Source: Utricularia gibba
Lineage: Eukaryota > Plantae > Magnoliophyta
DNA: 64,000 nt
Assembly (NCBI GenBank): GCA_002189035.1
Contig: CM007990.1
Span: 4,836,001 to 4,900,000 of the forward strand
Direction of reading: 5' to 3'
The translations under genes were made by a program, and so were the position numbers. Numbering within the stretch: position 1 is the first letter of the stretch; the number at the start of each line of letters is the position of its first letter. Positions 26,570 through 64,000 of this stretch are shown piece by piece. The notes under the pieces are model-generated. The model did not search any database and was not told the origin of the DNA. It saw nothing but the letters and a program-made list of their open reading frames with translations.

Positions 26570-26928
26570 TGAAAGGATTCGTGTAGCCTCCGATCTCGAA
26601 GCCTTAAGAGGATTTCTGGGGTTTCTCGGATGAACACAAGAAATGTTTTATTTTATTCCGCACAAAAGAATTACATTGTTTGTTCCTAATTTATAGAGTA
26701 AAGGAATAGCTTCAGCCATTGACTAAGGACACGGAAAGAGGCTGATTTGCTTGCGGAATTTGTGGGGGTTTCCTTCTTTTGTTGTTTTCTTGCATCCTGT
26801 CCAGAATCAGTTCTTGAATAAGATTGTCATCTCCAGCGTTGATTGATTTGCATTCCCTTCCAAGTATAGTTACTCATCAATTGCTGGCTTACTTAGGCAG
26901 AGTAAAGTCTTCGCATCAGATTCTAACA
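26570..26928 (-). repeat. 3' LTR of copia element
   Basis: About 9 substitutions versus the other LTR by manual comparison (~97.5% identity). Confidence 0.95.
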
Positions 26929-29900
26929 CTCCTCCTTGATGGGAAGTGCTTTCCTCCTCCTCAATTTCAGGTGTTCCTGGGAGTTCTTGAAGGCCCATGG
27001 TGTCTCGGTGTTGACAGAAGCTTTTGGGATAGAGGAATTTGGTGAGTGCATCGGATGCTTGTAGTTCCGAAGGTATGTGCTCCAGGTGAATTATTCCAGC
27101 TTGTACATAGTCCCTTAGGACATGAAATTTCACATTTATGTGCTTGCATCTTCCAAACAGCACAGCATTTTTAGACATGTGAATTGCTGATTTGTTGTCT
27201 ATCTTGATGGTTATGGGTCTGGTCGTTGGCATTTTGAGATCATCTAGGATCTTTAAGATCCACACCACATGATTTGAGGCTGCTGCGCATGCCATGTACT
27301 CCGCTTCAGATGATGATTGAGCAACCACTTCTTGTTTTTTACTGTTCCAAGAAAACGCTGTTCCGCCTAGAGTTAAAATGTAGCCTGTTGTTGACTTGTA
27401 ATCTACTAGATCACCTGTGAAATCACTGTCTACATAGCACTCAAGTAGGGGGTTAGTGTATTTTTTGAAGTGAAGTGCAAAATTGATAGTACTCTTTATA
27501 TACTTGAGAATTTTAATTGCTGAATCAAAGTGATTTTGGTGTGGCTTTGTCATGAATCTAGAGAGATAACTTACAGCGAAGGTGATGTCTGGCCTTGTAG
27601 CAGATAGGTACATGAGTGAACCGATGATGCTTCGGTATATTCTTTCGTCCACTAAGTTTCTTGGGTCTGATATGTTTGCCTTTCCTTGCATTGTGTCGAT
27701 TGGGACTGGTTTTGCATCTGGTGAGATGGGTATTGAAGTATATTTTCCCTTGCTGAGCCTATATTTCTTGATGAGGTCCCTGCAGTATTTAGTTTGTGCT
27801 AGGGTGATATAATCATCCCCTTGTGTGATCTCCAGCCCGAGGAAATATCTAACTTCACCTAGATCAGACATCTCAAATGCTTTCATCAAGTTTTCCTTTT
27901 GCTGTTTGATGAGTTCTTGATCTGCACCTGTTATGAGTATGTCATCTACGTATAATGAGATAATTACCTGTGCTTTACCTGGTGTGTCTAAGATGTACAA
28001 TGTAGGATCGCTCTTGCTTCTTTTGTATCCGGTGATCAAGAAGTGTTTGTCTATTTTGGTATACCATTCCCTTGGTGCCTGTTTGAGACCGTATAGAGCT
28101 TTGTGGAGAAACAACACTTTCTCTTCTTCTCCCTTTCTCACAAATCCAGGGGGTTGTTGGATGTAGATTTTTTCTTGCAGTGTTCCATTTAAAAACGCCG
28201 ACTTCACGTCAAGGTGGTAAACTTTCCAGTTGTGACATGCTGCAAGTGCTAGAATGAGCTTAATTGTATCAAGCCTGGCCACAGGTGCAAAGGTTTCATT
28301 GTCCGAGTCCTTACTTTTGAGAGTATCCTTTCGCCACTAAACGTGCCTTCAACTTGTTTATTGTTACATCTGCATTCAGTTTTGTCCTAAAGACCCATTT
28401 GACTCCAATTGGTTTTCTGTCTGTTTTTTCAACTAGGCTCCAAGTTTGATTTTTTTCTATCATTCTGATTTCTTCTTCCATTGCATATTTCCATTCTGGT
28501 TGTTCCAAGGCTTTATTGACTGAATCTGGTTCTTTGTAGGCATTTTGCTTGTTTGTTCCATCTGCCATCAGCACATAATCTGAATCTGGGTATCTTGTTG
28601 ATGGAGTCCGTGTTCTACTGCTCCTTCTTGCTTCGGATTCCAGGTTTTGTGGTTCTGATTCGTGCACTTGTTCTAAGCGGCCATTTTCTCCCTCTGTTAT
28701 TTCATCTCCAGGAAGATAGATATCGTTTTGGGCATTTTCTACGGACTGCTGCCCAATAGGGTTCGTTTCACTGCTATCTTGCTCTTGATTTCTGCCTTCC
28801 TCTTCGAAAAACATAATTTCATCATTTCTTGTAGCAGCTCGATTTCCAGTTTCATTGCCTTCAGCTCCTGTGTATGCTGGCTCATCTATAATATTTTGAT
28901 TTGTTGTTTGTGTATATTCTTCGTCTGAATTTTCTGGAGTCTGGCTTTGCTCTTCAGATGCATGTTCATCATTTACTTGCTTGTTGTTCCAGTTTGGGAA
29001 GAAGTTCAGAATTTTGGTTTTGAGGTAGTCTCCTGTTTCATGGAACTCTTCTCTTGTTTCTTTCCAATTCCAGCCTCTTTCTTCATCAAATATCACATCT
29101 CTGCTGATGATGATTTTTTTTGTTGCGAGATCCAAAATTCTGAAGCCCTTTGTAGTGTTGCTGTAACCTAGAAATACACCAATTTGAGCCCTTTTGTCTA
29201 GTTTTGACCTCTTTTGCTTAGGGACATGAGTATAGCATATGCATCCAAACACTTTCAGGTGCTCAATACTAGGTACACGCTCATGCCAGAGCTCAAACGG
29301 TGTCTTATATTCTGATGTTCCTTTTGTTGGCAATCGGTTGAGGAGATATACTGCTGTATTTACAGCTTTACCCCAGAATCTCAAAGGAATTTCTTTTCCG
29401 TATAGGAGACATCGCGCCATGTCCATAACTGTCCTATTGCGCCTTTCGTTGACTCCATTTTGCTGTGACGTGTAAGGGGCAGTGAAGTGATGAATTATCC
29501 CTTCTTCATTGCAGAGGTTCTCCAATTCTAGAGCTGTGTACTCTCCACCATTATCAGATCTTATATATTTGATCTTCTCTCCACTTTGATTTTCTACCAT
29601 TGCTTTAAATATCTTGAAGCTTTGTAATACTTCTGATCTGTGTTTAAGGAAAAACACCCAACAAAATTTAGTGAAATCATCTACGAAGATAAGAAAATAC
29701 CTATTTCCTGATAGAGTTTCTGTTTGCATCGGTCCACACACGTCGCTATGAATAAGTTCCAATTTTTTTTTTGAATTCCAGGTTCCTTTTCCGAATTGTA
29801 GATGGCATGACTTCCCAACTTGGCATATTTCGCACACTTCCTTAACTGTGGGGAAGCTTGAGAGCCCTTCAACAAGTGAGTTTCTCTGAATTTTCTTGAT

Positions 29901-31437
29901 GGATGTGTAGTTGTGATGACCGAGCCTTTGGTGCCATTGTTTTGCATTTTCTTTTGCTGCCATACTTATCAAAATTTTTGAGTCCCTGCCTTCTTGTGGA
30001 GTTGACGTTCTTAGTGGAAATACTCTTCCTTCCATTGTGATGTTTAGAATCTCCTTGCCAGCTTGTGTTACCACCTTGCAGCTCTGATTTATAAACAGAA
30101 CATTCAATCCTTTAAGCATAAGTTGTCCCACACTGAGTAGATTATGTGAAGCTGAGGGGACATAGTACACATTTGATACATGCAGGAATGTGCTTCAGTG
30201 TCTAGTCGAATTGTGCCAGTTCCCAAAGCCTTGATATAGTTTCCATCTGCTATTTCTATATCCCTTCCATAGAGTGGCTGATATGATACAAAGATGTCAA
30301 AGTCGTTAGTCAAATGGTTGCTGCATCCACTGTCAATTAACCAAGTGTCTTTAGCTCTTAGGTTTGTTGCTGCTGCTAGAATTGTGTATTTGCGCATATT
30401 GTAAATATCAATGATTTCTTTTTCATTAGAAATGAAGGAGCTCATAGCTTTTGCAGTGTTCTCAGAGTTTTGAGACAGATCTTCATTTTCACTTGTTATT
30501 TTCTCTCTTCTCTTCGGACAGACTCTTTGTATGTGTCCCTTTTCTTTGCAGTAGTGACATATCTTCTCTGGATGCCAAAATCAGTTGACTTGGAGGTGAT
30601 TCTTCTGCTTGCAAAAGGGGCACTCGGGATGAGGTCCAATTCGCACCTTATGATCAGATTTCTTTTCAAAATTTGCTTTGAAGGCTATCTCCTTGCTAGC
30701 TCTTGATGCCCTTGTGCTGTCGGTTAATTCAGCATTGTAGAGAGCATTCAGAAGTTCCTCAGGGGTGTGCTTTTTCAATCCTCCAGAGGCTACAATAGCT
30801 GTTAGTGCTGTATCAAAAGAACTGGGCAGTGCAGAAATGATTCTGTTTTTAATTCTTCTGTCGTCGACTGTTTCTCCAAGCTTTGTGAGTTGCTTCAGAA
30901 TACTATGGAGATTTTCCGCCAGTGTTGTGATTGATTCCCCAGGTTTCAGCATCAGATTATCAAGTAGATGCCACTGGTGATTAATCTCCTTTTCAATTTT
31001 TTCTGGGTAGGTTTGTAAGCTTTGTTCAAAGCCTTCCATGCTGCAATTGGATTTGGGGATTCTATGAACACTTCATAGACTTCAGAGGTGACTGCAGCCG
31101 ATAAAATATTCATTCCTCTAAGTTCCTTGTCTTCTCTTTCTTTTATAAGTCTGCTCCTCTCCTCATTAGTTGCATTTTCAGGGATTGTTAGCTCTGCTTC
31201 AAATACATCCCAAGCCTATTGGCTTTTGAGGTAGAGTATCATCCGTAATGACCAGATTCTGAAGTCTTTTCCATCAAACATATGGAGTGGAATCAGAGTG
31301 TTGTTTCCAGCCATGTAATCTATAACAAATGAGGGGTCAGAAAACTGTTTCGTAGATAAGTGACTTACGCTCTTCTTGCAAATTCGTTGTGTTGGTTTTT
31401 TTTCACTAGTGAGATGAACATCCCATAGCTGTCACCA

Positions 31438-50125: not shown

Positions 50126-51957
50126 ATGGGAGATACTTCTTGCAAGTTTTTGCCGATCTTTTTCTTCCTGTTTTTTGTATCTTCGCTTTCTCCGGCTTCT
50201 TCATGAGTTTCAACGACACCGATCGGAGTTTCAGGCCGACGGAGGAGTTGAGGAAGCTCAGGTTGATAAGATCCCATCTCCGGAGAATCAATAAGCCTGC
50301 AGTGAAGACAATTCAGGCAAGTTTTTATTTTTTTTTTCTTGCCCTTTGTTGTTTTCTCCTAATCAGATGGACGCTTGCGTTGAACAGAGCCCTGATGGTG
50401 ATATCATAGATTGTGTGATGTCACATGAACAGCCGGCTTTCGATCATCCCAAATTAAGAGGGCAAAAGCCACTAGTAAGAACGAAACCCCATTGCCATTC
50501 TGTTGCTGGTTTTACAATCCAATAGCTCAGTTTTGTTGGTGAGTTGCAGGATCCGCCTGATAGGCCAAAAGGGCATTCATCAAGAAAGCATGTTCTTGAA
50601 GAAAGCTTCCAGCTTTGGAGCATCAACAATGAGTTCTGTCCAGAAGGAACCATTCCAATCAGAAGAACAACAGAGGCAGACATTGTAAGAGCAAGCTCTC
50701 TCCTTCGATTCGGGAAGAAGATAAGGCCGGTTCGGAGAGAATCCTCCAGCAACATGCATGAGGTTCATACTTCATCAACAATAAAAACCAAGTCTTTCAT
50801 TCTTTCATCAACCATGAGTTTCATATCAAATACTCTCGTTTTGGTTCCTTCTGTTGCAGCACGCTGTAGGTTATGCATCTGGACAGGAATACTACGGAGC
50901 GAAAGCAAGTATTAATGTGTGGGCTCCAAGAGTTGCTAATCCATACGAATTCAGCTTGTCACAAATGTGGGTTATTGGTGGTTCTTTTGGAGGTGATCTT
51001 AACACCATTGAAGCAGGTTGGCAGGCAAGTTCCAGTTTCTCTTCATTGTTATTTTCACAGACAGAACAGAACACGTTCACCACTAACATCTGAGCTTCAT
51101 TCTCATTCTTGAAAAACAGGTTAGCCCTGAGCTCTATGGCGACAACCACCCCAGATTCTTCACCTACTGGACTGTAAGTTAACTGCCAGCGCTTTTCATA
51201 GCTGCTAATTATCCTTGGAACTAAGATTAAGATCAATGCAGAGCGATGCCTACCAAGCAACAGGCTGTTACAACTTGCTCTGCTCTGGGTTCATTCAAAC
51301 CAACAGCAAAATAGCAATAGGAGCAGCCATTTCACCAACTTCTTCCTACAACAGCGGACAGTTCGACATCACCTTGTTAATATGGAAGGTAAATCACCAT
51401 AGTTCAAATTTCGTTAAAAAAAAAAAAGTGAGAAAGCGTGAATAGCAGAAAAGCGCGGCCTTTCACCATGCTTCAAGCACAATCATTCTAGCTGGTGGTG
51501 CTTTTCACATCATTTTTCCCGCTTCCCCGTAACCCAAACTTTCCCCGACTTTGAACTGGAATTCAATCAATCTCCTCAGGACCCAAAACACGGAAACTGG
51601 TGGCTGGAATTCGGCAACGGAGTGTTGGTGGGTTATTGGCCATCGATTCTGTTCACACATCTGAGAGAGCACGCAAACATGGTCCAGTTCGGGGGTGAGA
51701 TTGTAAATACACGTAGTATGGGGACTCACACGCCGACGCAAATGGGAAGCGGGCATTTCGCAGGAGAAGGGTTCGGAAAGTCGTCGTATTTCAGAAACCT
51801 GCAAGTGGTGGATTGGGACAACAGCTTGATCCCACTCTCCGATCTCCGGGTACTCGCCGATCATCCCAACTGTTACGACATACGCGGCGGCGTTAACAGA
51901 GTCTGGGGAAATTACTTCTACTACGGCGGCCCCGGGAAGAATCCCGGTTGTCCTTGA
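50126..51957 (+). CDS. Neprosin-family (DUF239) peptidase with activation peptide, ~411 aa; apparent 1-nt deletion in exon 1
   Basis: Exons 50126-50316, 50388-50474, 50550-50762, 50860-51024, 51120-51173, 51242-51388, 51580-51957. Motifs SPDGDIIDCV, CPEGTIPIRR, NTIEAGWQ, GCYNLLCSGF, FYYGGPG. Introns 1 and 4 have GC donors. The ATG 50126 frame stops at ~50204 unless one base is added. Confidence 0.9.
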
Positions 51958-55301: not shown

Positions 55302-55612
55302 TCAAGGAGCAGGCGGTGGATCACGCACGTTGGCCATTGGCGCTGGAATCGGGAAGTCGATCGACCGCCTCGAAACTGCGAACGGAAACATCTTCCGGTT
55401 GTTGCGAGATGGGATAGACATCTCTGAAACTTAAAACAAACGACCAATTTTCAGTGCCTGTGATGGGATCACTGCTAGTGCAAGCATGAATTACCTTGAA
55501 GAGGAACTGCTGCTGTTGCTTTGCCGGCGGCAAAGCAGTGTGTAATCATCACGATAAGCAGCAAGAGACTCACCATGAATGCAGCAGTGGCTCTGCTATC
55601 AAGTTTCTTCAT
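55302..55612 (-). CDS. Small secreted Pro-rich peptide precursor P0 (79-81 aa, two exons)
   Basis: Exon 1 55612-55495 (MKKLDSRATAAFMVSLLLLIVMITHCFAAGKATAAVPLQ), GT donor, ~65-71 nt intron with two in-frame AG acceptors, exon 2 55423 (or 55429)-55302 (EMSIPSRNNRKMFPFAVSRRSIDFPIPAPMANVRDPPPAP*). TATATA ~70 nt upstream. Confidence 0.7.
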
Positions 55613-56140
55613 ATCCAATGCTAAAGACTCCTCCTTTCTCTCAGTTGGCCTTGGCTACAAGGGAGATGAACCTTGGCACTTGTATATACAAGGAAGGCGA
55701 GCTCTACTCTTTCACCAACCCTGTTTTTCCTTGGGCGGAAAGTAGATTCCACACTCCTGATCCGATATTGAGGACCCTTGACCTGGAACGCGTCAAGTCT
55801 TTGGTCACTTTGAAAACCATTACATTGCGTAGGCGCGTTTGTTTCTTCTTAATCTTTTCGATGTATACGTGTGGACTGTGTAGTCTCCTTGCGCGGGCTT
55901 TTCATTCTAGAACAAAGCAGACGCGTTTATTTCTTCAAGCGACGAGCTTGAGCCACTATTGACATCGTCTTAGATAGCCAAACGTAGGCATGTTCCTCCG
56001 TCGAGTTCGACTCATTCACTGATAACCCAATTTATCTTACAGAAAACTTGATAATGCATTGCTCAACATCAAGAACTACAGGGAGACCGTAACTCTAAAA
56101 TCGTCAAAGAAGCAACAGATGCCATAAACATGGTACAACT

Positions 56141-56407
56141 TTACAGCAATTCCCCCTCCGGTGTTGGTGATGGTTGTGGTGGATACAGCAATTCCCCCTC
56201 CGGTAGTGGTGGTGGTTGTGGTGGAGGTGGACTGGGGACCTCCGAGATTTTAAACTGTCTTGTCATCGGCGCCGGAGGCCTGATTTCCATCTCCCTTTTG
56301 GAATCTGCAAGTGCGAGCCCGAACATACTCTGGCGGAGCGGAGAGGCCAAGCATGGTGCAATCAGGAGCAGCAGGAAGACAGCCAAAGCTGCTGTTGGTT
56401 TCTTCAT
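56141..56407 (-). CDS. Small secreted Pro-rich peptide precursor P1 (88 aa)
   Basis: MKKPTAALAVFLLLLIAPCLAS signal peptide; DSKR, PPAP, poly-Pro and two PEGELL ends; TATA-like sequence upstream. Confidence 0.8.
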   Translation of the reverse strand: MKKPTAALAVFLLLLIAPCLASPLRQSMFGLALADSKREMEIRPPAPMTRQFKISEVPSPPPPQPPPLPEGELLYPPQPSPTPEGELL

Positions 56408-57154
56408 CTTGAGTTGGCTCCTGCTGAGGAAGGGAGATGAATATATAACACATTTGGAGCAAGTTGTGGACAGCAAACGCCTTTTGAGAACGGAATGTCA
56501 GGTAGGAACGCAGACGCCCACCTGGTTAGAGACTGCGAATGGGCCGGGCCGAATCACCGACACGTTAATTTTGAAAAAATAGTAAGGGTGTTTAGATTTT
56601 AGAAAAGTACATAATTTGAAATTTGAATGTATGTATTGAATTATAAATATAATAAAAAATTCTGAAAAATTCAGAATAATGATTATTTTATTATTAAATT
56701 TTTGACATAATTTAAAATTCATAAAAGTATAATTATTAAAATATGATTTTTAATTAAAAAATGAAATTAAACGAAAAGTTAAAACTATGTAATAAAAAGT
56801 ATTTTTAGATTTATGTTATTTTAGAGACATTGGTTTTTTTTTTTTTTACCAGATAAAACCGTAAGAACTGGGAAATATCATTGGCTAGAGTTCATCCAAA
56901 CCAAACCAAGAGGCAATTCACTGTGTGTTCACAGATACAATAGCAGTACTAACATGCACTTGGTGATAGCAAAATCCCCACACTAAGTGATGCAACGATC
57001 ACTCAGAACTCAAGAAGAAGATTGCACGCACTCCTTTTGAAACAGGCAGAATTCTCATAGGTCTTCTCTTGAGTAGAAGTGTTCCTAGGGATTCCGGTAA
57101 ATCTTCTCATGAGTTTGCGAAAGATAAAAGTATCGAATGGACCAAAGTGAGGCT

Positions 57155-57380
57155 GCTTTGATACCAATGCAGATATGTTTTTTGGAATTAAAAATCTTGT
57201 GAATAAGACGAACACATATGAAATTTAAGTAAATAAGAAATATAGATTTCATTAGAAAAAAATTAAATACAATCTATTATTATTGATAATTTTTTATATA
57301 TTTGATTATTTTAATTATATTTATTGATATATTATTGTTTTTTCTAATAAGATTAAACTGAAAATTTGTGACTAGGCTCC
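57155..57380 (-). mobile_element. AT-eroded TRIM relic (paralogous copy at ~62398-62620)
   Basis: gctttgatacca is the reverse complement of a Met-i PBS; the adjacent sequence aligns to the reverse complement of the TRIM LTR with many transitions toward A/T. Confidence 0.55.
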
Positions 57381-57590
57381 ATTTATTTGAGATGACTGTA
57401 ACACGCAAGCACTAAGCATACACTCAAGACTGCAAGCAAAGTCCAAAGTCCATAGACGAAGTGTAATGGATTGGACCCAACATATTTGACCTAAAATAGG
57501 TCAAACGACATTACTGTAAAAATAACAAACCTCGGAGCCAACACAAACAACGGCGTCACGAAGCGGAGATGCCGCAAACGTGGAACACCT

Positions 57591-57826
57591 TTACACCATT
57601 CCTCCCTCCAGTAGTAGTGGAGGCGGATCGCGGATAAACGACATCTCATTCTGCTTCCCGCTGTTATCTGCAACATTTAAATGGGTCTTGATAAACCCAT
57701 TTTTGGCCGGGTTATGATCCCCCTTTTGGAAACTGCAAGCGCGGGCATCCTCCCGTGGACCGGAGAGGCCAAGCATGGCGCGATCACGAGCAGCAAGAAG
57801 ACAGCCAATGCTATAGGTTTCTTCAT
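57591..57826 (-). pseudogene. Peptide precursor P2, disrupted (49-aa ORF 57826-57677)
   Basis: MKKPIALAVFLLLVIAPCLASPVHGRMPALAVSKRGIITRP, then a ~43-nt palindrome-rich replacement containing TAA. The ancestral C-terminus KQNEMSFIRDPPPLLLEGGMV* survives in another frame. Confidence 0.75.
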
Positions 57827-58344
57827 CCTGACCTGAACTTGACTTAGGCTCCTCGCCGATCAAGGGAGACAAATATATACTACACTTGGAGCTACATTTC
57901 GACATTCGAAGCAAACGCCTTTCGTGGACGGGATGTCAATTGGGAACGCATGCGCCCTCTTGGTCGGAGACTGAGAATTGGCTAAGAAAATTGGTCAGAT
58001 CAGTCACACCTGGTACTTACCATTGACGATGGTGAAACTCTTTTGTATTATTTAGATTATATTATTATATTTTCAAATTAATAGAATGAATAATCAGTCT
58101 TTGTTTCATTGGTGTGTTGATATATTGGTGAGTTTAAATTATTTGAATTTAAATAAATTCAAATACGTAGGTTTAAAAATATACATATTTTCATTGAATA
58201 TACATATAACCATATATGTATTATTATATAGATATAATGATAATTATACCTATATAATTAGTATAATTATATCTTCATATAAAACAAAATAATTTTATTA
58301 AACACATTATAAATCAATCTTATACCTTAACTTCAAACCACGCC

Positions 58345-58690
58345 TCATAGTCAAATCTTAAACTAGCGACGGACGATCGTGCCCGCGCCACAACGGGCCC
58401 GCTGGAGGTAGTGGTTGATGGCGGTGGCGGGCAAAAAGCAAAGCGGGCGGCAGTGGCACGGTCGACGGTAGACGTGGGTGGCGGTGGCGGTTAACGTCCG
58501 TCAACCTGGGTGAGCTGCGCTGCGCTGTTCATTCTAGAATGAAAGCACACGAGTCGGAGTGGTGAGGATGGTGCTCGTGGTCGTCCTGGTGGTGGTGTTT
58601 CTTACCGCCGTGGCAGTGTCCGTTGATTCGCCATAGGCGGTGAAACCCTAATCCGAGAGTTCTCCCTTTCGGAATCTGCGATCATCTGGT
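58345..58690. repeat. GC-rich unidentified repeat, duplicated at 63520-63870
   Basis: Near-identical blocks starting caaatcttaaa(a)ctagcgacggacgatcgtgcccgcg; part of the peptide-cluster duplication. Confidence 0.8.
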
Positions 58691-59762
58691 TGTGTGGAGA
58701 TTTCTGATAGTGATGTATAAGAGTATGTGGCTTTGTAGGACGAATATGGTGATAGCAGTTTATATCGGTGTGTGAGGGTTGTAGAACAAATATGAGAAGA
58801 GAATGTGGCGATGCTGTGATTTTGGAAATTGTATGATTTTGGAAATTGTTTTCCTCAATGAGGAATTTTTCTGCATACAATGTTAGTTTAGGACGTGCCT
58901 GGATACACATATTTATAGTTCAATTGTGGTTAACGGTTGCCTACTTCTTGGAATTGTTGGATCATCGTTTGTAGTCCATTTCCTTACTTTGCTGTCCAGC
59001 ATAATTAGCACGAGATGCTGACATGTCTTCTTCTTCCTCGTGTTATCTTTCAACGCACTCCTGATTTCTAGGTTTGACTCTTTCACATTTCTAATAGCTT
59101 GCTGTTGCTTTGTCTCATGTTCATCCTCACTCATCAACAATTTCCGGGGCTTAAGAAACGACTCATTTCAAGAAATCTCTCTGCATCTTGCCCTTGAATG
59201 AAGAGAAGAGAATAGAAGAAAACTCTCTGCAAGATGCTAACCAGGAAGCCATAGGCTTCTTCATCGGTGCTGAACTTGTGTCCATGCGGCATCCCTCCTG
59301 AAGGTTGGCCTCGATGAATTGAACAACGAATTGTGTGAGAATGAAGCTGATGTTGAAGCCAAGGACTCTGAATGATTTCACAAGAACTCTGCTGCTGCTA
59401 AGAAGGCGAAGAAAAGGCATAACACAGACATGAGACTTATTATCTTGGATCCTAATTCCATGAAATGGGTTTCTAGTGAATATGAATCAAATACTAAGGA
59501 GCCCACACATAAAGAGAAGGCCCAAGTCCATGTTTGATGTGATTGTAGGTCTAACCAAGCACCATACCTATGTGCAAAAGGCATGGAAAATAATAATGGT
59601 AACAAAGGAGATAACATCATCTCTAATTTTTTAGGCTATCAATACTTGCTGTATATTGAGTAATGTATGTTCCTTACAAGTGACAAAATAATATTTTCTA
59701 TGTTCATCACGCACTTGCTCTTCATACCTCTCATACCCGTACAATCCTTCAATACTAGACTT

Positions 59763-60269
59763 TGGAATAGTCTAGTATATAAGAAACTACATATTACAAT
59801 TAATTAGTTGGGTCTAATCTTTTCTATTGTGATCCACGTTTCTTGTGTACTTAGGCTTCACGTGTGCGCTCGCCTGACTCATTGGATCCTGAATTTCAAC
59901 ATGGTATCAGAGCGTTTGACTCACGGCACGGCTTAGGTGGCCAAAATGGATTTCGTTCTGGTCTGAGATTTGATTAATAAAAAAAAAAGAGATGCACTGC
60001 GCTTAGGCGACAAAAATTAAATCGGCCTATGAACTAAACACTACCTATAATAATAAAAAAAAGGAGCAAGTCATCACTGGATCACAGACTAGTTCGACTT
60101 GATGGCAGGTGTTAGAATACACAATCACACATTGGATAATGAAAATGGAATAGTCTAGTATATAAGAAACTACAATTGATTGGGCCTAATCTTTTCTATT
60201 GTGATCCACGTTTCTTGTGTACTTGAGCTTCACGCGCTCGTCTGACCCATCGGATCCTGAATTTCAACA
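59763..60269 (+). mobile_element. TRIM (terminal-repeat retrotransposon in miniature)
   Basis: 5'-truncated LTR ending ttcaaca at 59901, PBS TGGTATCAGAGC at 59902-59913, ~200-bp non-coding interior, purine-rich tract, and 3' LTR tgttagaa...ttcaaca at 60110-60269. Confidence 0.75.
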
Positions 60270-60883
60270 CAAAGCAGACGCGTTTGTTTCTTCTTGCCCT
60301 TTTTTGATGTGTACGTGTTGCAATTTAAGCAAAGTTTGCTTCAAGCAACGAGCTTGAGCCACCATTGACATCGTCGTACATCGCCAAACGTCGGCATGTT
60401 CCTCCGTCGAGTTCGACTCATTCACTGTGAACAGAAAACAACACTGTAATTGTGTTGAAGAACTGGGTAACTACCCAGAATGAGCTAAGGATAATTTTCA
60501 GAAGGAGAAAACCTTCATACACCAAAAAACGTGTACAGAATTGTGAAGAAGAAGAAGACAGCACGCTGGATTGTATATTCTAAACACACGCTTCACACCT
60601 GTGCCACATGGTGCAATTCATATTTATTACTACAGTGATGGGGATTGACTAATGATAAAAAAACAGCACAATTATGAAGTTCACGGTGGGTAGAAGATAA
60701 CACGAAGATACCCATCTTCAGAACCCAATTTATTAACACACTGATAACCCAATTTATCTAACAGAAAACTTGATACTGCATTACTCAGCGAGGTTATCAA
60801 GAACTACACGGAGGCCATAACTCGAAAATCATCAAAGAAACAACAGCTTCTCGAAGCGCAGATGCCATAAACATGGTACAACT

Positions 60884-61102
60884 TTACAGCAATTCACCCT
60901 CCGGCGGTGTTGGTGGTCGTGGTGGAGGCGGACTGGGGACACTCCAGATTCTAAACTGCTTTTTAATCGGCGCCGGAGGCCCGATTTCGATCTCCCTTTT
61001 AGAATCTGCGAGCCCGGACATACTCTGGCGGAGCGGAGAGGCCAAGCATGGTGCAATCAGGAGCAGCAGGAAGACAGCCAAAGCTGCTGTTGGTTTCTTC
61101 AT
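60884..61102 (-). CDS. Small secreted Pro-rich peptide precursor P3 (72 aa)
   Basis: MKKPTAALAVFLLLLIAPCLASPLRQSMSGLADSKREIEIGPPAPIKKQFRIWSVPSPPPPRPPTPPEGELL*; paralog of P1. Confidence 0.8.
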   Translation of the reverse strand: MKKPTAALAVFLLLLIAPCLASPLRQSMSGLADSKREIEIGPPAPIKKQFRIWSVPSPPPPRPPTPPEGELL

Positions 61103-62825
61103 CTTGACCTGAACTTGACGAAGGGAGATGAATATATCACACATTTGGAGCTAGTTGTCGACAGCAAACGCCTTTGTGAACAGAATGTGAGGTAGGAACG
61201 CTAAGCCCACTTGGGTCAGAGACTGAGAATGGGCCGGCCACATCACCGACGTCTTCACGATGGGCGTAATTTTGAAAACTACCTAATGTATTACAGGGTG
61301 TTTAGAAAATTACCTACTGTTTGTAGTATGTGTTCTTAAGTTTAGAAAGTTATCACAAAATTCTGAAAAATCCAGAATAATTATTATTTTATTATTAAAT
61401 TTCAACATAATTTAAAATCCAGAAAAGTATAAGTATTAGAATATGATTTTAATTGAATAAAATTTCAACATAATATAAAATCCCTCTCATTTCAAGATGA
61501 AAGAATCATTTCGAATTTTTATGAGAATTAAACTTATATTTCATTCCATAAATGAAAAGTTAAAACTATATATTAAAAAAAGTTGGGTTTTTTAAGCTAA
61601 CTACAAATAAAAAGTATTTTTAGATTCATGTTGTTTTAGAGACATTGCTATTTTTTTTACAAGGTAAAACCCCAAAAGTGTGTTTTGCATAGAGGATAAA
61701 AGAGGACAGTTTAATAGGAAAAGAAAAATAAGATGTTTAGTAGTTGGAATAAATTATACTCAGAATAAATTATATCATAAATATGAAATATAATAATAGG
61801 AAGTAATGTATTAGGATAAAATAATATTGTCATATACCTAATTCTTATATATCACCTCTTATCTTTGATATAATTTATCCATGTATCAAATACATTCTAA
61901 GAACTGGAAATCAGCATCATTGGCTGGAGTTCATCCAAAACAAACCAAGAGGCAATTCAGTGTGTGTTCACGGGATACGATAGCAGTACTCACACGCCCT
62001 CGTTGATAACAAAATTCCCACACTAACTGCTGCAACGATCACTTAGAAGAATTGAAACAGGCAGAATATCATCCGTGCTAGGCCTAGCAATTCTTCCACT
62101 CCGATGAAGGAAACCACCCGCAGTCTGTTTATTCCTTCTACACAAATCCATTTTCAAGGTAAAAATATAATTTTTTTTTAGTTTTCTATGAAACCTGAAA
62201 ACTATATTGAATTAGGTTTCAAGCCTTAGCGCTTCACATTCTTATCAACAACATAGAAGAGAAAGTCAAGAATTTTATAATGATGGAATAACTTATTCTC
62301 ATAGGTCTTCACTTGAGTAAAGTGTTTCTAGGGATTTTTGTAAATCGTGTCATGAGTTTGCGAAAGAAAAAAGAATCGAATGAATCAAACTTAGGGTGCT
62401 TGATACCAATTGTAAATATATTTGTTGAAATTAAAGATGTGATGTATTGAACGAATACATATAAAATCTAAATAAACAAAAAACATAAATCATATTAACA
62501 AATATTAAATTTAATTTATTATTATTGATTTACAATTTATTATATAATTGATTGTTTTAATTTTATTTCTTAAGATATTATTGTTTATTCTAATAATATT
62601 AAAGTGAAAATTTGCGACTAGACTCCATATATTTGACATGACTGTAACACACAAGCACGAATCATACACTCAAGACTGCAAGCAAAGTCCATAGACCAAG
62701 TGTAATGGATTGGACCCAACATATTTGACCTAAAATAGGTCAAACGATATTACTGTAAAAATAACAAACCCCAGCCAACAGAAACAACGGCGTCACGAAG
62801 CGGAGATGCCGCAAACCATTCCTCC

Positions 62826-63014
62826 CTACACTAGCGGTGGAGGCGGAGTGGGCAGAGACTCGATATCATTCTGTTTTTCCGCCGGCGCCGGAGGCCAGAT
62901 TATGATCTCCCTTTTGGAAACTGCAAGCGCGGACATTCTCCGGTGGAGCGGAGAGGCCAAGCATGGCGCGATCACGAGCAGCAAGAAGACAGCCAAAGCT
63001 ATAGGTTTCTTCAT
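62826..63014 (-). CDS. Small secreted Pro-rich peptide precursor P4 (62 aa)
   Basis: MKKPIALAVFLLLVIAPCLASPLHRRMSALAVSKREIIIWPPAPAEKQNDIESLPTPPPPLV*; paralog of P2. The TAG sits where paralogs have GAG (E of EGGMV/EGELL). Confidence 0.75.
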   Translation of the reverse strand: MKKPIALAVFLLLVIAPCLASPLHRRMSALAVSKREIIIWPPAPAEKQNDIESLPTPPPPLV

Positions 63015-64000
63015 CCTGACCTGAACTTGACTTGGCTCCTCGCCGATCAAGGAGAGGCAAATATATACTACACTTGGAGCTACATGTCGACATTCGAAGC
63101 AAACGCCTTTGTGGACGGGATGTCAAGTGGGAACGCATGCACCCACTTGGTCGGAGACTAAGAATAGGCTAAGAAAATTGGACAGATCAGTGACACCCGG
63201 TTCTCCCCCATGACGATGGTCAAACTCTTTTGGCTTATTTAGATTATATTATTATATTTTCAGAATGATAGAATTAATATTTTGGTGTGTTTGGATATTT
63301 ATAGATTTAAATTATTTGAGTTTAGATAAACCTAAATATGTGGATTTAAGAATACTAATACTTTTCTTAAGTATAAATATATCCGTATATGAGAATATTA
63401 TATAAATATAATAATAATTATACTCAAATAATTGATATAATTATACTTTAATATCAAATAACATAATAAAATTAAAACTATTATATACCAATCTTATAAT
63501 TTCATATCAAACCAACCCTCTCAAATCTTAAAACTAGCGACGGACGATCGTGCCCGCGCCCCAACGGGCCCGCTGGTGGTAGTGGTTGATGGCGGTGGCG
63601 GGCAAAAAGCAAAGGGGGCGGCAGTGGCACGGTCGATGGTGGACGTCGGTGGCGGTGGCGGTTAACGTCCGCCAACCTGGGCAAGCTGCGCTGCGCTGTC
63701 TATTCTAGAATGAAAGCACACGAGTTGGACTGGTGCTCGTGGTCGTCCTGGTGGTGGTGTTTCTTACCGCCGTGGTAGTGTCCGTTGATTCGCCATAGGC
63801 GGCGAAACCCTAATCCGAGAGTTCTCCCTTTCGGAATCTGCGATCATCTAGTTGTGTGGAGATATCCGGGGCCTGAGAAAACGACACATTTCAAGAAATC
63901 TCTCTGCATCATGCCTTTGAATGAAGAGAAGAGAATAGAAGAAAACTCTCTGGAAAATGCTAGGCGCTGAACTTGCGTCCACGTGGCAACCCTCCGAAGT

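Follow-up and report, generated by a model that had tools for sequence, protein, structure and literature searches.

Putative small secretory proline-rich prepropeptides encoded by a tandem gene array of Utricularia gibba

Peptide signals of plants are still being found family by family, and small open reading frames (ORFs), intronless or composed of two exons, are routinely missed by annotation. Among the described systems, the hydroxyproline-rich systemins (HypSys) are those to which the genes presented here had previously been likened. HypSys precursors are about 146-165 amino acids (aa) long and each contains several hydroxyproline-rich peptides of 15-20 residues; the tomato pre-pro-HypSys, for instance, consists of 146 aa, bears a signal peptide and contains three peptides of 15-18 aa (PMC11371470). 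The group is known from Solanaceae and Convolvulaceae, and its members show little mutual sequence similarity (PMC11371470). In this work we analyzed a stretch of 64,000 nt of the bladderwort Utricularia gibba (assembly GCA_002189035.1, contig CM007990.1, positions 4,836,001 to 4,900,000, called the window below), in which a first-pass annotation had pointed to a tandem family of genes, P0 to P4, for secreted Pro-rich peptide precursors.

Seven members of this family were found in the window, four of them intact or nearly intact (P0, P1, P3 and P4) and three dead (P2, and two additional copies named X1 and X2). On the basis of sequence comparison, the former appear to be real, or very recently real, protein-coding genes for lineage-restricted small secretory prepropeptides, and we would put the probability of this interpretation at roughly 0.55. 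The prepropeptide layout comprises a signal peptide, a conserved S[KR]R site, an adjacent PAP and a Pro run. The ORF list and the translations confirmed five related ORFs, P0 to P4, on the minus strand, and all five products begin with MKK and a strongly hydrophobic stretch (Kyte-Doolittle maxima of 3.1-3.4 in 12-residue windows), which closes with small residues at positions -3 and -1 and is a signal peptide as predicted by rule only. The A[VD]S[KR]R site is likewise present in five of five. In P0, P1, P3 and P4, it is followed at constant spacing by [PI]PAP and then by the Pro run, which in P1 and P3 reads SPPPP; the family core is thus S[KR]R-x5-PAP, with PAP five residues past S[KR]R. Outside the signal peptide, no cysteine is present in the P products. 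Of the five genes proposed initially, P2 had to be withdrawn, as it is a pseudogene with a frameshifting 32-nt insertion, its PPAP codons being decayed and its Pro run placed out of frame. The EG[EG][LM][LV] end, ascribed at first to most members, was retained in frame only by P1 and P3; it lies in a shifted frame in P2 and behind a nonsense codon in P4.

The array is composed of P0 and a three-gene unit (P1, P2, X1), the latter copied as P3, P4 and X2. Comparison of the window against itself with blastn delimited this duplication as a block of ~5.2 kb with 76-92% identity, in which P1 pairs with P3 and P2 with P4. In DNA, P1 to P4 are clear paralogs, and the two gene types, P1/P3 and P2/P4, are older paralogs with ~74-76% identity over ~340 nt. 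P0 is more distant, with ~38% identity; nevertheless, it keeps the S[KR]R-x5-PAP core, and the similarity of its second exon to P4 exceeds that of 4997 out of 5000 composition-preserving shuffles (p ~6e-4), so that, judged by sequence, P0 is a member of the same family. Its predicted spliced product, encoded by two exons, has 79 aa. A TATA-like box lies upstream of every copy and AATAAA-type signals occur 49-256 nt past the stop codon; moreover, a 12-nt promoter word, TTCATCTCCCTT, is common to P0, P1 and P3, and is found in P0 at 55659-55670, past the TATA-like box. Two of the genes were altered at their 3' ends. In P1, the 14 C-terminal codons are duplicated in frame as a 42-nt tandem copy within 56116-56225 (repeat family D5), and in P4, the nonsense codon, followed by a 17-nt deletion, shortens the coding sequence (CDS) by 5 codons. 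A second exon after the GTAAAG conserved at the stop codon was considered and ruled out, as homology between the types ends ~150 nt past the stop and no common downstream ORF is present.

The evidence that these frames are, or were, translated comes from comparisons internal to the array, and each piece of it is modest. Within the duplicated unit, conservation is highest in the segment encoding the signal peptide, where the gene types show an identity of 0.87-0.88; the values are 0.68-0.86 for the promoter, 0.54-0.68 for the mature part and 0.72-0.80 for the first ~90 nt that follow the stop. Between P1 and P3, there are no differences over 69 positions of the signal peptide, but 25 over 136 (18%) in the promoter and 14 over 94 in the mature part. 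Six substitutions separate the types in the signal peptide, and in the proposed frame four of them are synonymous and two non-synonymous (p = 0.046 versus neutrality), whereas 0-2 are synonymous when the same six are read in the other five frames; the corresponding omega is 0.12-0.15. Indels within the intact CDS (3, 6, 12 and 42 nt) are all multiples of three, which would occur by chance with a probability of ~0.012, while those of the flanks (1, 1, 2, 6, 8-9, 13, 14, 15, 17 and 17 nt) do not keep the frame as a set. Coordinates of the array and of its surroundings are collected in Table 1.

Table 1. Members of the peptide gene array, their parts and neighbouring features (positions within the window)
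Feature	Position	Strand	Basis and remarks
P0 exon 2: AVSRR site, IPAP, PPPAP end, stop	55302-55423	-	ORF; similarity to P4
P0 intron, 71 nt, GT..AG, phase 1, U-rich 3' end	55424-55494	-	predicted splice, read from sequence
P0 exon 1: start codon and signal peptide	55495-55612	-	ORF, translation; AG/GTAATT donor directly after 55495
P0 TATA-like box	55682-55690	-	70-78 nt ahead of ATG
Repeat block A (P1, P2, X1)	55930-58704		blastn self-comparison
P1 CDS, 88 aa, intact	56141-56407	-	ORF, translation
P1 TATA-like box	56440-56447	-	sequence read
P1 upstream block, conserved in all four copies	56472-56544	-	self-comparison, repeat family D3
P2 pseudogene, whole extent	57591-57826	-	signal peptide and KR site intact; Pro run and EGGMV end out of frame
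P2 ORF, 49 aa	57677-57826	-	ORF, translation
X1 core (ADSERE..SPPMANQ), dibasic site lost	58602-58685	-	tblastn within window
X1 leader and start-codon remnant (ATG AAG AAG CCT..)	59254-59278	-	local alignment to P4 leader and signal peptide
Repeat block B (P3, P4, X2)	60336-63866		blastn self-comparison; homology to at least 63962
P3 CDS, 72 aa, intact	60884-61102	-	ORF, translation
P3 TATA-like box	61131-61138	-	AATAAA-type signals 150 and 256 nt past stop
P4 CDS, 62 aa	62826-63014	-	intact through Pro run; TATA-like box 63060-63067
X2 core, copy of X1	63764-63847	-	start codon deleted; leader remnant 63963-63975
BURP-domain genes, at least eight in tandem	3981-40673	+	one with Pfam BURP E 2e-61
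Copia element	26870-31039		interrupts BURP array
Neprosin gene	50544-51957	+	Pfam: activation peptide E 5e-16, neprosin domain E 3e-34

Several findings weigh against functional genes. Of the seven copies, three are broken and a fourth, P4, is truncated. The omega of the mature part is 0.7-1.7, indicating no measurable constraint outside the motif positions; this value, close to 1, fits relaxed constraint equally well as diversifying selection. The mature part is also the most diverged segment: P3 and P4 differ there at 26 of 76 positions, as compared with 57 of 304 elsewhere (p = 0.005), and P2 and P4 at 23 of 75, as compared with 18 of 347. Such a pattern fits diversifying selection, but gene conversion of the flanks fits it too, and patchy gene conversion could also explain the identity of the P1 and P3 signal peptides. 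Only 29-40 nt separate the TATA-like box of P1 and P3 from the ATG, so that their leader would have to be very short. Finally, neither a homologue nor a product was recovered from outside the window. Word-index protein search returned no match for P3 or exon 1 of P0, an exhaustive HMMER profile search with five members over 1.84 billion representative proteins gave 0 matches at E <= 0.001, and among 600 stretches of metagenome contigs matched by pattern, 0 were related. Exact look-up of 17 ORF variants from both strands in a collection of 15 billion proteins found none; this blank says little, however, since the neighbouring PMEI gene is likewise absent from that collection, which does not include the proteome of this plant. 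More generally, searches of protein libraries have low power for peptides of ~70 residues from an unsampled plant lineage (a profile of 71 positions needs ~40 bits to pass in the 1.84-billion library), and their blanks are weak evidence. In the ESM Atlas, only unnamed plant clusters, below 0.9, were met with either the whole protein or the mature part, and a literature search on secreted or Pro-rich peptides of Utricularia yielded nothing relevant.

The alternative which survives these comparisons best is that of a dying array, in which the family once encoded a secreted protein and the present copies are unexpressed neutral relics, with ORFs still open because they are too short and too young to be hit. 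It would readily account for the broken and truncated copies, the omega of ~1 in the mature part, the very short leaders of P1 and P3, and the lack of a product or relative in any protein collection searched. Against neutral decay stand the bias of signal-peptide substitutions towards synonymous ones, the exclusively in-frame indels of the CDS, a promoter and a signal peptide conserved to a degree well beyond the block average of ~82%, and preservation of the motif in the old paralog P0. We therefore regard this explanation as possible, though with a distinctly minor chance of being correct.

The decayed members themselves illustrate how copies of the array are lost. In P2, the frame was shifted by the insertion at 57673-57704, beside which the decayed PPAP codons lie. 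The insertion is a 32-nt near-palindrome with the arms AAATGGGT..ACCCATTT, adjoined by a cluster of substitutions, and it looks like a transposon footprint or a scar of error-prone repair. X1 and X2, one additional decayed relative in each block, were detected by tblastn of the products within the window, and the similarity of the X core to P3 exceeds that of 4996 out of 5000 shuffles (p ~8e-4). The start remnant of X1 contains a 2-nt frameshift and is parted from the core by ~440 nt which X2 lacks. The X copies and the GC-rich stretch downstream of them (58352-58704 and 63531-63866) are ~95% identical between the blocks, as compared with the block average given above; they differ by a 9-nt in-frame indel, and the same two stops are present in both. 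For the GC-rich part, coding constraint was rejected, as no frame showed an excess of synonymous changes, and either gene conversion or a non-coding function is possible as a cause of the high identity. Together with the block duplication and the divergence of the mature part, the decay of P2, X1 and X2 bears out the rapid birth, death and sequence divergence noted in the first-pass annotation; the signalling or defence role which it attached to them would be a conjecture only.

A separate problem is the possibility that the products are structural glycoproteins of the cell wall or surface, either very short extensin-like proteins or arabinogalactan peptides anchored by glycosylphosphatidylinositol (GPI), the anchor signal of which is hidden behind a stop codon or a frameshift. 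SPPPP is the arabinosylation motif of extensins, and its occurrence in P1 and P3 agrees with this possibility, as does a moderately hydrophobic stretch past the stop codon, which occupies the same frame in P1 to P3 and the +1 frame in P4. The X copies, in addition, continue in frame past the stop as a Pro/Ser/Thr-rich sequence, and the family may accordingly descend from a longer glycoprotein rich in hydroxyproline. Nevertheless, the stop codon precedes the tail in all four copies, the tail indels (15, 17, 2 and 14 versus 12 nt) disrupt the frame, and the tails contain only 7-15 uncharged residues in a row, with a 12-residue hydropathy of 1.7-2.2, far from the values of the signal peptides. 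A GPI-anchored arabinogalactan peptide was rejected for the present genes on these grounds, although the ancestor of the family may have been a GPI-anchored glycoprotein. Composition points the same way: Pro, Ala, Ser and Thr make up 43-44% of the mature part of P0, P1, P3 and P4, below the 50% rule for arabinogalactan peptides, with 8-14 charged residues in each product and no GPI signal in frame. At least two SPPP(P) repeats would be expected of extensins, but P1 and P3 have one each, and P4 and P0 none. A structural role of the present genes is thus unlikely.

Solanales and Lamiales are neighbouring orders within lamiids, and it could be asked whether the P genes are true HypSys members which extend that family from the former order to the latter. 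Apart from the taxonomic proximity, such a relationship would be supported by the signal peptide and by the Pro-rich tracts flanked by charged residues. Resemblance includes a secretory precursor with Pro tracts of the SPPP/PPS kind among charged residues, the lack of conserved Cys and a lineage-restricted occurrence. No sequence link to HypSys was detected by the profile search (at the threshold and in the library given above) or by word search, but as HypSys members are little alike, the missing similarity is weak evidence against membership. The organization of the precursors also speaks against it. The P products have 62-88 aa and a single Pro tract, the only multiplicity being the duplicated 14-residue end of P1, whereas those of HypSys are roughly double that length and contain several peptides, three within 146 aa in the case of tomato (PMC11371470). 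The S[KR]R-x5-PAP core with its dibasic site has, moreover, not been described for HypSys. The kinship with HypSys suggested at first found no support, and we consider true membership very improbable. Still less credence, in fact hardly any, can be given to the idea that the minus strand is non-coding, the array being either a conserved non-coding unit or a source of antisense Gly-rich products (e.g. from 56130-56582, plus strand): antisense ORFs of 72-150 aa are open and the whole unit, with promoter and 3' region, is conserved to a similar degree, but these ORFs are devoid of a signal, of a start context conserved between copies and of any Pfam match, in every antisense frame most substitutions of the best-conserved segment are non-synonymous, and Rfam finds nothing over 54-64 kb.

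If the P genes encode secretory prepropeptides, as we favour, their fate may be outlined from established plant secretory biology. The signal peptide would direct the product to the endoplasmic reticulum, prolines would be hydroxylated and contiguous hydroxyprolines arabinosylated. A subtilase or a kexin-like protease would then cut at the [KR]R dibasic site, and a hydroxyproline-rich extracellular peptide of 25-50 residues, acting as a ligand or a defence peptide, could be released. The family grows by tandem duplication of blocks and quickly loses copies, its signal peptide and promoter being kept while the mature part diverges fast. A more specific proposal, which is rather doubtful as a whole, is that the products are hydroxyproline glycopeptide ligands or antimicrobial peptides of the bladderwort lineage, without common descent with HypSys, released at the dibasic site, and that diversifying selection acts on their mature part; a connection with the trap and its microbes is conceivable, as is processing by a neprosin-type protease encoded nearby. 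Neprosin is a Pro-specific protease found in the digestive fluid of pitcher plants, and the gene in question lies 3.4 kb from the peptide array, although this closeness may be a coincidence. If expressed, the array would represent a lineage-restricted family of Pro/hydroxyproline-rich peptides in a genome well known for its loss of non-essential DNA, and maintenance of several copies there would itself suggest that they are used. It would also provide a compact case of a conserved signal peptide joined to a fast-changing mature peptide.

The surroundings of the array are those of plant nuclear DNA, with a BURP tandem array, a copia element, a receptor-kinase fragment, and TBL/PMR5, PMEI and neprosin genes; for the PMEI gene, the nearest relative in the database, with 49% identity, comes from Erythranthe guttata, in agreement with an origin within Lamiales. 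A link of the peptide array to the BURP genes, regarded as split precursors of BURP cyclases, was set aside, as the P products have no repeated cores and no conserved Tyr/Trp, and five unrelated genes lie between the two arrays. At the low-coordinate edges of the blocks, a stretch of 97 nt (55930-56026 and 60336-60432) is 91% identical and contains a short ORF (MNESNSTEEHA..), which lies on the minus strand and is unmatched in Pfam. At the opposite side, 59146-59239 and 63869-63962 show 90% identity, and block homology thus reaches the end of the window; the peptide array may therefore extend past 64000.

How the P family stands among the known systems can be judged at several levels. No signature of CLE, CEP, IDA/IDL, PIP, RGF, PSY, CIF, PSK, RALF or CTNIP was found when P0, P1, P3 and P4 were scanned with regular expressions, and SGPS, a DY sulfation site, HN or GH at the terminus and a Cys pair were likewise missing from these products. 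Pfam gave only noise, above E 0.2, with all six ORF pieces. The placement of the family outside CLE, CEP, IDA, PIP, RGF, PSY, CIF and CTNIP, put forward earlier, thus agrees with both results, and a match to any characterised family, which had been named as the outcome that would count against the proposal, came neither from Pfam nor from the profile search. In general design, the P products still resemble the post-translationally modified signalling peptides CLE, CEP, IDA/IDL, PIP, RGF/GLV, PSY and CIF, with a precursor of ~70-100 aa, a signal peptide, a variable pro-region and a short conserved motif containing Pro, on which hydroxylation or arabinosylation would be expected. They differ in the position of the conserved motif, which is placed in the middle of the protein beside the dibasic site and not at the C-terminus. 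With short extensins and arabinogalactan peptides they share the signal peptide, SPPPP and the AP, SP and TP dipeptides, and with the latter also the size, but they contain many charged and bulky residues.

In the mode of evolution, a counterpart is to be found elsewhere. Legume NCR and defensin-like genes combine a conserved signal peptide with a hypervariable mature part, and the array described here is similar to them in its tandem arrangement, frequent pseudogenes, conserved signal peptide and promoter, and in having the mature part as the most diverged segment. Those proteins are, however, Cys-rich and folded, while the P peptides are Pro-rich, presumably disordered and, signal peptide apart, devoid of Cys. 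By analogy, the conserved-signal and variable-mature pattern, together with the rate of pseudogene formation, would resemble arrays of defence or recognition peptides more closely than developmental hormones. Plants commonly contain orphan ORFs for secreted Pro-rich products, and in kind the P family is no surprise; as far as can be judged from its sequences, it belongs, as an unassigned and probably lineage-restricted variant, to the well-known class of secreted Pro/hydroxyproline-rich peptide precursors.

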